DNA from: Bugula neritina
Lineage: Eukaryota > Animalia > Bryozoa
Length of the DNA stretch: 64,000 nt
Assembly: GCA_964035545.1 (NCBI GenBank)
Contig: OZ037765.1
Location: 31,991,504 to 32,055,503 of the forward strand
Direction of reading: 5' to 3'
A program made the position numbers and the translations under genes. Of the stretch, positions 2,855 to 51,546 are shown piece by piece. A model generated the notes under the pieces. It was not told the DNA's origin and made no database searches. It saw nothing but the letters and a program-made list of their open reading frames with translations. Position 1 is the stretch's first letter. Each line of letters begins with the position of its first letter.

Positions 2855-3775
2855 ATGTGGAAACTATACAAGCTAAAAGACATGATGATGAGTACAAGTT
2901 TGTCTGAAGAAAACAAGGTTGGTGCAGAAGACATGTGTGAGAACATAGCAGACAACCAACAGCCAAACAGTACCCCAGCTGGGAAGAAGTTTGTATGTGA
3001 AATATGTGATGCTAGTTTCACTATGATAGGAAACTTGAATCGCCATAAGAAAGGTCATTCAAATCATCGTCCTTACACCTGCAAATTCTGCCTGAGGGGC
3101 TTCCTCCGAAAAACCAGTTACAATGAGCACATCAGACTGCATACTGGTGAGAAACCGTATCAGTGTGAAAGTTGTCTTCAGACATTTGTTAGAAAAAAAT
3201 GTCATAAGATACATATTAAAAAATGCAAAGAAAATAGTTCGTCAAAACTCAGGAACCCAACTTCTCAAGAGAATCTGATGAATTCTTCTGGAGGCCTGAC
3301 TTCTTCACCTTCACCTTTAGCTGAAGATCAACCATTAGATTTATCAGTCAGGCAATTTCAGTTTGACAATAACACGAACAGTCAAGTTGGACATGCCCAA
3401 ATGAAGAAGCTCATAAAAACGGGATTGCAGTTTTATTTACCTTTCAAGATAGCATATGGAGAATACTTGAAGATGTTACCAATAGACAATTCACCAACTT
3501 TAATTTCTAATAATAATGAATCACAAAGCTACTCTTCACTACATCAAAGTGATTCTAGGCTGACAGCTGCCCATCCAATTGAGCCTGTGGCATTACATCA
3601 ACTCCAAGACTCCGGCATCAACCAGCTATGGCCATGTAGATATTGCCAAGTTTATTTTACAGACTCAGTTCAACTTAGAGAGCACATGTTATGTCATGAT
3701 ACAGTAAATCCTTCCACCTATACTGTATGTAGGAAAGTTTGTAAAAGTCCTACTGAATTTCTAAAATATCTCTAG
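2855..3775 (+). CDS. Intronless Ikaros-like C2H2 zinc-finger protein, copy 1 (last finger degenerate)
   Basis: 306-aa ORF. Three N-terminal fingers (ASFTMIGNLNRH; TGEKPY linker; third ends H-x3-C), PLDLS, and C-terminal CRYCQVYFTDSVQLREHMLCH. The last finger has C>Y and H>Y changes. Confidence 0.85.
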   Translation: MWKLYKLKDMMMSTSLSEENKVGAEDMCENIADNQQPNSTPAGKKFVCEICDASFTMIGNLNRHKKGHSNHRPYTCKFCLRGFLRKTSYNEHIRLHTGEKPYQCESCLQTFVRKKCHKIHIKKCKENSSSKLRNPTSQENLMNSSGGLTSSPSPLAEDQPLDLSVRQFQFDNNTNSQVGHAQMKKLIKTGLQFYLPFKIAYGEYLKMLPIDNSPTLISNNNESQSYSSLHQSDSRLTAAHPIEPVALHQLQDSGINQLWPCRYCQVYFTDSVQLREHMLCHDTVNPSTYTVCRKVCKSPTEFLKYL

Positions 3776-4380
3776 CTTTAGAATAGTTGCTCAATATCAA
3801 ACAGTTTCAAGTATAATATTCCTAATGTTTTATTTTATTTTTAATGTTTTATTTCATTAAATACATGCACATATGTCCAAATATCCCAACTAACCCGTCT
3901 TTTCATTTTAACTGGAGTTGATATAAGTATCGCACAAGCGTAATAAATTACTAACATATCACTATTATATTACTAATACTACAATGCGTCTTCTACACTA
4001 ATTTCAGTCAATCAAGTTGGTTAGATTTACATAAAATACTAAAGCATAAATTAGCTGCATTGTTTTTTCAAACATCATTATAAATCTATATATATATTTC
4101 GGTGTTTCGATTTTATTACTTTTCTAACAATAGAGTTGTAAGCATAGCTTAGCATAGTTTAGCTAAGTAAGTGCCGTTTATAACATAAACATTGAATGGG
4201 GGCTTTGTTTACATTCCTTTCACCATAAGCTTATAACAGCCTAATAGAGCTTTTACTTTAGTCTTTATTCGACTATCTCAAGTATAAGCTAAAACTGTTT
4301 TTTTATCATTTCTCTGCTTTTTATTGGATAAATTCAGACTTTTGAACTGAGCAACATTTCTGTTGGGTCTACACTTTTAA

Positions 4381-4613
4381 GTGTGTGTGTGTGTGTGTGT
4401 GTGTGTGTGTGTGTGTGTGTGTGTGTGTGTGTGTGTGTGTGTGTGTGTGTGTGTGTGTGTGTGTGTGTGTGTGTGTGTGTGTGTGTGTGTGTGTGTGTGT
4501 GTGTGTGTGTGTGTGTGTGTGTGTGTGTGTGTGTGTGTGTGTGTGTGTGTGTGTGTGTGTGTGTGTGTGTGTGTGTGTGTGTGTGTGTGTGTGTGTGTGT
4601 GTGTGTGTGTGTG
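4381..4613. repeat. (GT)n microsatellite
   Basis: About 230 bp of pure GT repeat. Confidence 0.98.
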
Positions 4614-49745: not shown

Positions 49746-50162
49746 GTGTGGTGTGTGTGTGGTGTGTGTGTGGTGTGTGTGTGGTGTGTGTGTGGTGTAC
49801 GTGTGTGTGGTGTGTGTGTGGTGTGTGTGTGGTGTGTGTGTGGTGTGTGTGTGGTGTGTGTGTGGTGTGTGTGTGGTGTGTGTGTGGTGTGTGTGTGGTG
49901 TGTGTGTGGTGTGTGTGTGTGGTGTGTGTGTGGTGTGTGTGTGGTGTGTGTGTGGTGTGTGTGTGTGTGTGTGTGTGTGTGTGTGTGTGTGTGTGTGTGT
50001 GTGTGTGTGTGTGTGTGTGTGTGTGTGTGTGTGTGTGTGTGTGTGTGTGTGTGTGTGTGTGTGTGTGTGTGTGTGTGTGTGTGTGTGTGTGTGTGTGTGT
50101 GTGTGTGTGTGTGTGTGTGTGTGTGTGTGTGTGTGTGTGTGTGTGTGTGTGTGTGTGTGTGT
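49746..50162. repeat. 11-bp (GTGGTGTGTGT)n minisatellite grading into (GT)n
   Basis: Seen directly. Confidence 0.95.
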
Positions 50163-51066
50163 AATTTTCTACCTGTTCCAATAAACAACTAATGATTGTA
50201 ACAAAATATTCATGACTTCTGCTTTTACACTCTCCATTGAGCAAAACAAAAAATGTTAATACTAATAAATATTCATAAGAAAAGGTTTATTAATAAAATT
50301 TATAACCTTATATAAGGAGCATAATTATCATTGACTGCTCCATTGTGTGTGTAGCCTACACGTGATGTTAATGCATCTTATATAAAAATTTCCCTTCTAA
50401 TTATTCTGTCCTTCCAATGTGTAAGGATATTTTTGACAGTTTGGTATTTCTTATAATTCAATTTCATTATGCAGTATATTTATTATCTATAATTCAAAAC
50501 ACCCTTGAAAATGGCTTTCTGGTGGCGAGTAAAATAACCCATCAGAAGATCTCAATACGCACTGTGTGCATGGTGGTGGCCGTGCAAAAGATTAACCTAA
50601 AGGCTTATGCATTTTGTATAGAGTTTACGCATAGTACGTCACGAGTTAGCCACACTGGAAACATTAGCTCATTATTCAATCAGATTTAGCATATACTACT
50701 GTATTGAAATGTATCCAGGATAACTGGTGCAACATAAAAGTTTTACTGAGCTAAGCCACTACTTTACTAGTAAAGATAACTATTTTTAAAAAAAGTTGAT
50801 GCAGTTGATTCATGATAATCTATGTTTTATTATCTTTTGCTATAGTCAAACAAACTTGATTGATTTAATATTTAACAAAAAATTTAATATTATCATTATT
50901 AGGCCAGCGCAATATTTATACAAACTCTAGTTCAACAAAACCCAGGTAAATTGAGATTTAAATGCATGTGTTCGATATGTATTAATAAAATAACAAAATG
51001 AAAATAAATTAACAAAATAGAAATATTGTCTTTGAACTTATTTGATTTTGAAGAGCTATATTAAAA

Positions 51067-51546
51067 CTAAAGATGTCTCAGTAAATCAGTAGAATTTTTA
51101 CACATCTTTTCACATACAGTGCAGGTCAAAGGGTTTACTGTGTCATGGCATAACATGTGTTCTCTAAGTTGAACTGAGTCAGTGAAATAAACTTGGCAAT
51201 ATCTACATGGCCATAGCTGGTTGATGCCGGAGTCATGGAGTTGATGTAGGGCCACAGGCTCAATTGGATGGGCAGCTGTCAGCCTGGAATCACTCTGATG
51301 TAGTGAAGAGCAACTTTTCAATTTATTTTTTGTCCAAAGTAAAGCTGATGTGTCATCATTTGGTGAAATTTTAAAGCATCCTCCATAATATGCTGTCGCC
51401 AAAGGCAAATAAAAATTCAAACCAGTGTTAATGAATTTCTTAATCTGGGCTTGTTTAACTTGATTGTCTTTAATGTTATCAAACTGAACTTTCCTGACTG
51501 ATAAATCTAATGGTTTATTGTCAGCTAAAGACATGTATCTAACCAT
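51067..51546 (-). CDS. Ikaros-like copy 12: PLDLS plus dimerisation-finger half fused to the promoter core (may be a pseudogene)
   Basis: Junction AGATACATGTCTTT/AGCTGACAATAAACCATTAGAT joins the promoter core to mid-CDS. The 159-aa open frame uses ATGs inside the core. Confidence 0.55.
   Translation of the reverse strand: MVRYMSLADNKPLDLSVRKVQFDNIKDNQVKQAQIKKFINTGLNFYLPLATAYYGGCFKISPNDDTSALLWTKNKLKSCSSLHQSDSRLTAAHPIEPVALHQLHDSGINQLWPCRYCQVYFTDSVQLREHMLCHDTVNPLTCTVCEKMCKNSTDLLRHL

Follow-up and report, generated by a model that had tools for sequence, protein, structure and literature searches.

Organization of the zinc finger gene array

We analyzed a 64,000-nucleotide stretch of chromosome 1 of the bryozoan Bugula neritina (chr1:31,991,504-32,055,503; hereafter the window), which holds a tandem array of zinc finger genes that probably belong to the Hunchback/Ikaros-like class. 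Coordinates below are window positions unless marked chr. The assembly (216.00 Mb, with chromosome 1 of 35.64 Mb) was produced with hifiasm from PacBio HiFi reads at 132x coverage (PMC11480708).

The open reading frame (ORF) listing showed an ORF of ~300 amino acids recurring through the window. A tblastn search with a 312-residue copy as query detected 9 coding loci. A blastn search with a whole unit of 2.17 kb (~2.2 kb; 19019-21191, the reference unit, copy c4) detected 12 units on both strands between 2243 and 51823, 7 of them full and 5 partial. Homology between units reaches ~630 bp 5′ and ~540 bp 3′ of the ORF. A tenth coding copy (c0) lies 12 kb before the window start. Beyond c0, a six-frame search of the 216,009,554-base genome revealed no further copies, the remaining matches being generic finger similarity. 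The copies and fragments are as follows.

chr1:31978751-31979677, minus strand: c0, outside the window; all family-invariant positions kept, including the terminal ...EFLKHH
2243..4317, plus strand: unit 1 (c1), full; ORF 2855-3775 (306 amino acids), conserved start MMMSTS at 2882
6266..8413, plus strand: unit 2 (c2), full; ORF 6957-7823 (288 amino acids); found by tblastn and blastn
14276..15955, minus strand: unit 3 (c3), full, pseudogene; ORF pieces 15374-14940 and 14979-14482; found by tblastn and blastn
19019..21191, plus strand: unit 4 (c4), full; tblastn locus at 19717; ATG 19738 to 20655 (305 amino acids); the best-kept array copy
25256..26935, minus strand: unit 5 (c5), full, pseudogene; coding match at 26354; recent duplicate of unit 3
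29216..31385, plus strand: unit 6 (c6), full; tblastn locus at 29914; ATG 29935 to 30852; 94% identical to c4
33900..36039, plus strand: unit 7 (c7), full; tblastn locus at 34591; ATG 34612 to 35505; found by tblastn and blastn
36647..37358, plus strand: solo 5′ flank of a unit; 89.7% identity to 19019-19730; no coding part
39956..40823, minus strand: truncated unit (c8); coding match at 40203; 5′ flank and first ~270 nt of the ORF
41964..42396, minus strand: 5′-flank fragment of a unit; found by blastn
48322..48702, plus strand: remnant unit; 5′- and 3′-flank pieces joined, coding part deleted
50818..51823, minus strand: internally deleted unit (c9); ORF 51546-51067 (159 amino acids); found by tblastn and blastn

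A preliminary description of the window had reported a tandem expansion of at least 12 units in both orientations. The expansion and its two orientations were borne out by the tblastn and blastn units on both strands. The number 12 holds only if the noncoding fragments are counted, the coding loci numbering 9. The peptides quoted there (CNASFTMIGNLNRHKKGHS, ...HIRKC, PLDLS, and CRYCQVYFTDSVQLREHMLCHDTVNPLTCTLC followed by TEFL(K/T)H) are all present in the ORFs.

The array is real and not an assembly artifact, because it stands in a HiFi assembly of 132x coverage and an independent B. neritina assembly of 2020 also holds a tandem set (gene models of 855 and 897 nt, single exons). The nearest named proteins are 'hypothetical protein EB796_...' entries of the 2020 assembly. 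A look-up of the exact c4 protein in public assemblies returned no record.

The family outside Bugula and the origin of the expansion

A word-index search with the family alignment returned full-length relatives at 34-43% identity. These are the Watersipora subatra XP entry 'zinc finger protein Aiolos-like' (P0160), a protein from a metagenome contig (P0151), and proteins from Logan/ENA contigs (P0161-P0164, P0167). The intact ORF of ~305 amino acids encodes three N-terminal fingers, the third of the Cys-Cys-His-Cys (CCHC) type, a PLDLS motif and two C-terminal fingers. The three N-terminal fingers are ~90% identical across the family, with the pattern C-x2-C-x12-H-x3-C in the third, and the N-terminal finger ligands are invariant in 10 members. 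PLDL[ST] is conserved inside an otherwise unalignable linker. The C-terminal pair reads LWPCKHCQIYFxD...HMxxHDxxNPxxCTxCxKxC...EF[LM]xHH, with a stop codon immediately after. The family invariants comprise the finger ligands, the CCHC third finger, PLDL and the ...EF[LM]xHH end.

The gene consists of a single uninterrupted ORF in Watersipora, P0151, P0161 and P0163, has no second copy on the contig concerned, and stands tail-to-tail with SF3A2 at a distance of 2-3 kb. These four other taxa are Watersipora subatra and three contigs that are probably bryozoan. The sole SF3A2 gene of B. neritina is located at chr1:31.9768 Mb (+), and its coding match ends ~1.7 kb from c0 (-). Because the only SF3A2 of the genome adjoins c0, as in the single-copy taxa, c0 is the positional ortholog, and the window holds derived copies.

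In a protein tree, the Bugula copies of both assemblies formed one clade (support 100/100) without Watersipora and the other taxa. Since all Bugula copies are monophyletic, the amplification is confined to the Bugula lineage. A coding region without introns, pointed out in the preliminary description, was found in the Bugula units, in the orthologs of the four single-copy taxa and in the 2020-assembly models, and predates the amplification. The result is an ordinary lineage-specific gene-family expansion, in which most extra copies are already decaying. A single-copy ancestral gene, tail-to-tail with SF3A2, survives as c0, and DNA-level duplication of 2-11-kb segments, together with inversions and gene conversion, produced at least 9 more coding loci and several fragments in ~73 kb.

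State of the individual copies

Among the Bugula copies of this genome, c0 alone keeps the terminal HH, the ancestral end. Copy c4 has the three N-terminal fingers (third C-x2-C-x12-H-x3-C), PLDLS and two C-terminal fingers, and departs from the family invariants only in the change of the terminal HH to HP. Copy c6 shares this change, and additionally has PLDFS in place of PLDLS and an R to H replacement in the linker between fingers 1 and 2.

Three further copies have lost the last finger by different lesions. In c1, fingers 1-3, PLDLS and the first of the two C-terminal fingers remain intact, and the last finger is dead through replacement of its first Cys by Tyr (STYTVC) and of a His by Tyr (KYL*). 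In c2, it is lost by a frameshift past the first C-terminal finger, with a remnant in another frame at 7811-7879. In c7, it is broken by an internal deletion (CTLCRKGVQKFH*). The c3 ORF is split by a 1-nt deletion in an A6 run of finger 3, and a stop precedes the last finger; c5 carries the same deletion and likewise stops ahead of the last finger.

The partial units are more heavily damaged. Coding sequence in c8 corresponds to residues 6-90, that is, finger 1 and most of finger 2, and the solo 5′ flank at 36647..37358 stops 14 nt inside the ORF. In c9, positions 56-361 of the 5′ flank are fused in frame to the C-terminal half, which leaves PLDLS and both C-terminal fingers and no DNA-binding fingers. 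The c9 start codon and first six to eight residues (MVRYMS...) come from the normally noncoding 5′ flank (ATGGTTAGATACATGTCT...; 19360-19382 vs 51527-51546). Through the internal deletion, the ORF acquired a new start codon in frame, downstream of the promoter region that was retained. Five long ORFs are still open in the array. Erosion from the 3′ end, or outright pseudogenization, marks most of the derived copies.

Duplication, gene conversion and constraint

The window contains a segmental duplication of 11653..17825 and 22631-28805 at 98.6% identity, with an adjoining block, 18700-21985 and 28897-32182, at 95.2%. This recent duplication of ~11 kb copied the pair c3 and c4, giving rise to c5 and c6.

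Identities between copies are mosaic. Between c2 and c4, identity is 99.0% in the linker and 81.8% in the C-terminal fingers, and between c0 and c2 it is 98.8% in the fingers and 84.4% in the linker. Synonymous divergence (dS) is 0.02-0.14 in the finger region, 0.2-0.38 in the linker and 0.25-0.85 in the C-terminal fingers. The mosaic identities indicate that the copies exchanged sequence by gene conversion or unequal exchange. Because of these identities and the lesions of the copies, the array is a case of birth-and-death evolution with partial homogenization. Birth and death among the copies had been proposed in the preliminary description, and is documented by a frameshift, truncations and fragments beside the 98.6%-identical duplication within the ~11-kb block.

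Whole-ORF pairwise ratios of nonsynonymous to synonymous divergence (dN/dS, omega) ranged from 0.26 to 0.66. For the youngest intact pair, c4 and c6, dN/dS was 0.36 and replacements numbered 19/33, below the neutral expectation (binomial p=0.015). At least some of the derived copies are likely to be under weak constraint, and an array maintained for high dose is unlikely.

The putative base-contacting residues are nearly constant among the copies: FTMIGNLNRH is invariant, finger 2 varies between R and K and between S and T, and finger 3 between K and Q and between I and M. Because these helix residues hardly differ, amplification seems to have proceeded without diversification of DNA specificity.

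Long (CA/TG)n and (TA)n microsatellites lie beside several units (4334-4639, 18535-18957, 28537-29171, 49714-50244). Some entries of the program-made ORF list are artifacts of these repeats, which could also favor unequal exchange. A perfect 562-bp repeat with a 271-bp period (17822-18383 = 18093-18654) lies within the spacer that separates c3 from c4, two divergently oriented copies.

Relationship of the C-terminal finger pair

The genome was searched in six frames with the C-terminal pair. The best match outside the family was a terminal exon at chr1:27.10 Mb, which scored 36 bits with a single sequence (E 1.4e-6) and 50.8 bits with the family profile (E 4e-11). The 2020 B. neritina annotation names its ortholog 'ikzf5' (94% identical), and the Watersipora ortholog is called 'Helios-like'. 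In the reciprocal search, the profile of this ikzf5-type gene had its best non-self match, at 52 bits, in a gene at chr1:18.47 Mb, which we take to be hunchback from the middle-finger motifs KHHLEYHMRNH and VNKSMLNSH, the latter split by an intron. The loci used for comparison are as follows.

chr1:27099841-27101446, plus strand: ikzf5-type gene, multi-exon; terminal exon carries PLDLS and an Ikaros-type C-terminal pair
chr1:18465986-18470736, plus strand: candidate hunchback, multi-exon; middle-finger exons and C-terminal pair
chr4:24.35-24.40 Mb: chr4 two-finger cluster; at least 4 copies of a short terminal exon with two TGEKPY-linked fingers at the protein C-terminus

The ikzf5-type terminal exon ends ...CKHCNIIFLDRAMYHLHSGLHNCNSPLQCNLCGKECANPLEFSAHIIHT* (HIIHT*). 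Over the 14 kb upstream of it, no N-terminal fingers with canonical TGEKP linkers were found. The C-terminal pair of the candidate hunchback includes CVHCEMTFSNDAMYVIHMGYHGYQNPFVCNICG... and ...AMYVIHMGYHGYQNPFVCNICG....

Pairs were scored with hidden Markov model (HMM) profiles against a background of 2,727 generic tandem pairs drawn from proteins retrieved for the analysis; this background is enriched for good matches, and so is conservative. With the array-family profile, 11 of 12 ikzf5-type pairs scored above all 2,727 background pairs. With the ikzf5-type plus Hunchback profile, the family scored 35-52 bits (z 2.4-5.1), and 4 of 9 family pairs stood above the whole background. The less derived members reached 46-52 bits, above all 2,727. 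The Bugula copies themselves reached only z=2.8-2.9 and were outscored by 3-4 of the 2,727 generic pairs. Overall, family C-terminal pairs ranked in the top 0-0.8% of the generic pairs.

In a maximum-likelihood tree of the 47-residue pairs, the family, ikzf5-type and Hunchback pairs were split together from 49 generic pairs with support 100/99. The generic set included the best-scoring pairs and the array's own N-terminal pairs. The split held (100/97) against 45 generic pairs without a TGEKP-like linker, with the linker columns removed. In the ESM Atlas, neighbors of residues 225-312 were named 'Pegasus-like', 'Pegasus', 'Ikaros family zinc finger protein' and 'IKAROS family zinc finger 1', at 0.95-0.96. 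From these comparisons, the family probably belongs to the Hunchback/Ikaros-like class, a placement anchored on the ikzf5-type gene and candidate hunchback of this genome.

The chr4 two-finger cluster was considered as a closer relative and rejected; its linker is the canonical TGEKPY, and in the trees it is placed outside the clade of the family, ikzf5-type and hunchback pairs. A 3′ exon supplying the missing last His of the array proteins was likewise rejected, as no splice donor stands at the stop and all orthologs end in HH and a stop.

When 1.84 billion representatives were searched exhaustively with a profile of the C-terminal 68 residues, the best 150 matches contained no IKZF or Hunchback protein; the sole true relative there was P0151, and the list was dominated by huge poly-zinc-finger proteins summing many weak finger matches. 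Among the PDB matches listed for the first C-terminal finger and for the family C-terminal profile, no solved C-terminal Ikaros-type pair was found, the IKZF constructs being N-terminal only.

N-terminal fingers

The three N-terminal fingers were recognized by Pfam zf-C2H2 and zf-H2C2_2. All family members share C96, C99, H112 and C116 of the third finger (YQCETCLQTFVRKKCHKIHIRKC). The last N-terminal finger is of the CCHC type (C-x2-C-x12-H-x3-C) in the Ikaros family, as in F4 of IKZF1. The CCHC third finger ending HIRKC, to which the preliminary description had drawn attention, was found in the ORFs and is invariant in the family.

PDB searches with the whole protein, finger 1, and fingers 2-3 placed ZNF568, PRDM9, CTCF, HIC2, ZBTB and BCL11A chains above Ikaros and Helios. 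The chains of these two proteins and of Aiolos were only mid-rank generic matches, through their N-terminal fingers. ESM Atlas neighbors of residues 36-135 were BCL11A and generic ZNF clusters, not Ikaros.

Two likenesses drawn earlier were not upheld. Finger 1 resembles F2 of IKZF1 no better than it resembles fingers of BCL11A, HIC2, CTCF or ZBTB proteins, and the shared spacing with the dimerization domain (C-x2-C-x12-H-x3-H-x7-C-x2-C-x12-H) is the generic spacing of tandem C2H2 fingers. The proposed Ikaros-like identity is supported for the C-terminal pair, by the trees, the HMM ranks, the ESM Atlas and the names 'Aiolos-like', 'ikzf5' and 'Helios-like', and not for the N-terminal fingers. 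The C-terminal fingers grouped inside the Ikaros/Hunchback clade, and the N-terminal fingers gave no specific Ikaros signal.

Introns and the question of a retrocopy

Two related genes of this genome, the ikzf5-type gene and the candidate hunchback, have several exons. The preliminary description had suggested that the array derives from a retrocopy. This is contradicted by the flanks of ~630 bp 5′ and ~540 bp 3′ that were co-duplicated with the coding region, and by the location of all copies in one cluster. No poly(A) tract directly follows the c4 stop codon (target-site duplications were not looked for). The flanks included in the units, the location of the units in one cluster and the lack of a poly(A) remnant directly after the c4 stop show that the array grew by DNA duplication.

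Any retroposition of the single-exon founder from a multi-exon Hunchback/Ikaros-like gene would be ancient, before the bryozoan divergence, because four other taxa have the single-exon gene beside SF3A2.

Upstream of the c4 ORF, the 5′ flank has a TATA-like box (near 19240), the candidate splice donor GGTAAGT (near 19278) and, shortly ahead of the ATG, a candidate polypyrimidine/AG acceptor (near 19650-19665). An intron in the 5′ untranslated region of c4 is possible.

Evaluation of alternative explanations

The explanation that best accommodates these results is a Bugula-specific, DNA-level expansion of a Hunchback/Ikaros-like repressor gene whose copies are decaying, and we consider it probable. 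Several points weigh against the class assignment. The finger-pair alignment has only 40-47 columns. The tree is anchored on the ikzf5-type gene and candidate hunchback of this genome, without vertebrate IKZF1-5, TRPS1 or a foreign Hunchback; the first anchor is named by annotation pipelines only and the second by its middle-finger motifs. The generic-looking chr4 two-finger cluster nearly equals the family in the HMM tests. The last finger ends in HH and a stop codon, not in H-x3-5-H, and is not a canonical finger. The N-terminal fingers appear to have no specific Ikaros affinity. An alternative is a generic lineage-specific C2H2 family, in which the 3+2 fingers, PLDLS and the C-terminal pair came to resemble Ikaros and Hunchback by convergence; the expansion would then be real and the label wrong. 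Such convergence would fit the N-terminal matches to BCL11A, ZNF568, CTCF and ZBTB above Ikaros (PDB, ESM), the generic spacing, the similar scores of the chr4 cluster against both profiles, the low z of the Bugula copies, and the occurrence of PxDLS motifs in many unrelated repressors. However, it does not sit well with the tree support (100/99 and 100/97), which includes controls without a TGEKP linker, with the scores of the less derived members above the whole background, or with the ESM features of the C-terminal part, which point to Pegasus/Ikaros. The Watersipora ortholog was, moreover, independently named Aiolos-like by NCBI, the third finger is CCHC, and the pair stands at the extreme C-terminus. 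We regard convergence as unlikely.

It is less improbable, though still the weaker account, that only c0 works and that the array in the window is neutral duplication debris, gene-like through recent duplication and through conversion from c0. The HH end is found only in c0, c3 and c5 are frameshifted, the last finger is disabled in c1, c2 and c7, c6 has PLDFS, and c8, c9 and three more units are fragmentary. The dN/dS values of 0.26-0.66 are high for a transcription factor, and conversion accounts for the low dS in the finger region better than selection does. In contrast, c4 keeps all family invariants other than the HH end, the omega of 0.36 for c4 and c6 reflects fewer replacements than neutral (p=0.015), five long ORFs are open, and the 2020 assembly also has several open copies. 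We give very little weight to the version of the preliminary description, in which a retrocopy of an intron-rich Ikaros gene was amplified for a rapid high dose of one repressor. The uninterrupted coding region in copies and orthologs, and the multi-exon structure of the related ikzf5-type and hunchback genes, would agree with it. But the shared flanks and the larger duplicated blocks point to DNA-level amplification, no poly(A) remnant directly follows the c4 stop (with target-site duplications, as said, not looked for), and the SF3A2 synteny conserved in four taxa dates any retroposition before their divergence. The copies are also heterogeneous and mostly damaged, a poor fit to a dosage array.

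Predicted function

Ikaros and Hunchback combine DNA-binding fingers with C-terminal dimerizing fingers, and Ikaros has a PEDLS motif for CtBP (PMC5393059; also PMC5071621). The PLDLS motif noted in the preliminary description is present in the ORFs and kept as PLDL[ST] across the family, and CtBP binding is predicted. By analogy, the intact protein is predicted to act as a self-associating repressor that recognizes specific sequences and recruits CtBP. It would bind DNA via the three N-terminal fingers (two C2H2 and one CCHC), PLDLS would recruit the corepressor CtBP, and the C-terminal pair would self-associate, as in Ikaros and Hunchback. Because the base-contacting residues are almost unchanged, all copies would be predicted to recognize the same sites.

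A more speculative idea, to which we attach little credence, is that the array hard-wires as separate genes what vertebrate Ikaros makes by alternative splicing. On this reading, c0 and c4 would supply the full-length repressor, c1, c2 and c7 a DNA-binding form with a disabled last dimerization finger, and c9 a form without DNA-binding fingers that has PLDLS and both C-terminal fingers. If this were true and the copies were co-expressed, they would constitute a tunable network of dominant-negative forms and heteromers.

Comparison with known zinc finger families

Pegasus has three N-terminal fingers, the last of which is CCHC. The array protein is like the Ikaros family, and especially Pegasus/IKZF5, in having an N-terminal cluster of DNA-binding fingers and two fingers at the extreme C-terminus joined by a non-TGEKP linker, and also in its ESM neighbors and the names given by NCBI and by authors. 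Unlike the family, it is much shorter (~305 amino acids) and tandemly amplified, and its N-terminal fingers are not specifically Ikaros-like. The last finger of IKZF proteins ends H-x5-H. Compared with this end, the array protein differs in ending with HH right after the last helix. A PxDLS CtBP-type motif is shared with Ikaros (PEDLS; PMC5393059). Genes of the Ikaros family are multi-exon and make isoforms by alternative splicing (PMC5071621), whereas the array gene has a single coding exon, and so no splice isoforms of the coding region.

The array genes differ from hunchback in gene structure and locus, and form a separate clade known so far only from bryozoan-like assemblies. The hallmark of Hunchback is a set of four middle fingers with the motifs KHHLEYH... 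and VNKSMLNSH.... The array proteins lack these fingers, which are present in the chr1:18.47-Mb gene. Likeness to Hunchback and to the invertebrate Hunchback/Ikaros-like (HIL) genes, for example C. elegans ehn-3 (PMC3962486), lies in the C-terminal pair, which groups with the candidate hunchback and ikzf5-type pairs. DNA-binding fingers plus C-terminal dimerization fingers, as in Hunchback (PMC5393059), are predicted for the array protein.

The array also resembles lineage-specific tandem C2H2 arrays, such as KRAB-ZNF clusters, in its local birth and death, pseudogenes, inversions, gene conversion and transposon insertion. Unlike in KRAB-ZNF arrays, finger number has not diversified and base-contacting residues barely vary, and there is no arms-race diversification of DNA specificity.

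Cheilostome bryozoans would thus have a third Hunchback/Ikaros-like lineage besides hunchback and the ikzf5-type gene, which is compact, single-exon, located beside SF3A2, and expanded ~ten-fold in one genus. The family is small and tractable, and single-copy species could be compared with amplified ones for the effects of duplication, conversion and dimerization-finger erosion on a transcription-factor network. Tandem zinc finger expansions with many decaying copies are common, and the result is a useful annotation more than a surprise.

Neighboring elements in the window

Two other elements were annotated in the window.

42994..47973, minus strand: Ty3/gypsy-type long terminal repeat (LTR) retrotransposon inside the array; LTRs of ~300 bp, 97-98% identical; young
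56814-58955, plus strand: exons of a flavin amine-oxidase gene, downstream of the array (Pfam Amino_oxidase, E 2.6e-10)

The ORFs of the retrotransposon are open, with gag-protease at 47487-46363 (374 amino acids) and reverse transcriptase-RNaseH-integrase at 46320-43639 (893 amino acids). The flavin amine-oxidase gene may encode an L-amino-acid-oxidase-like enzyme.

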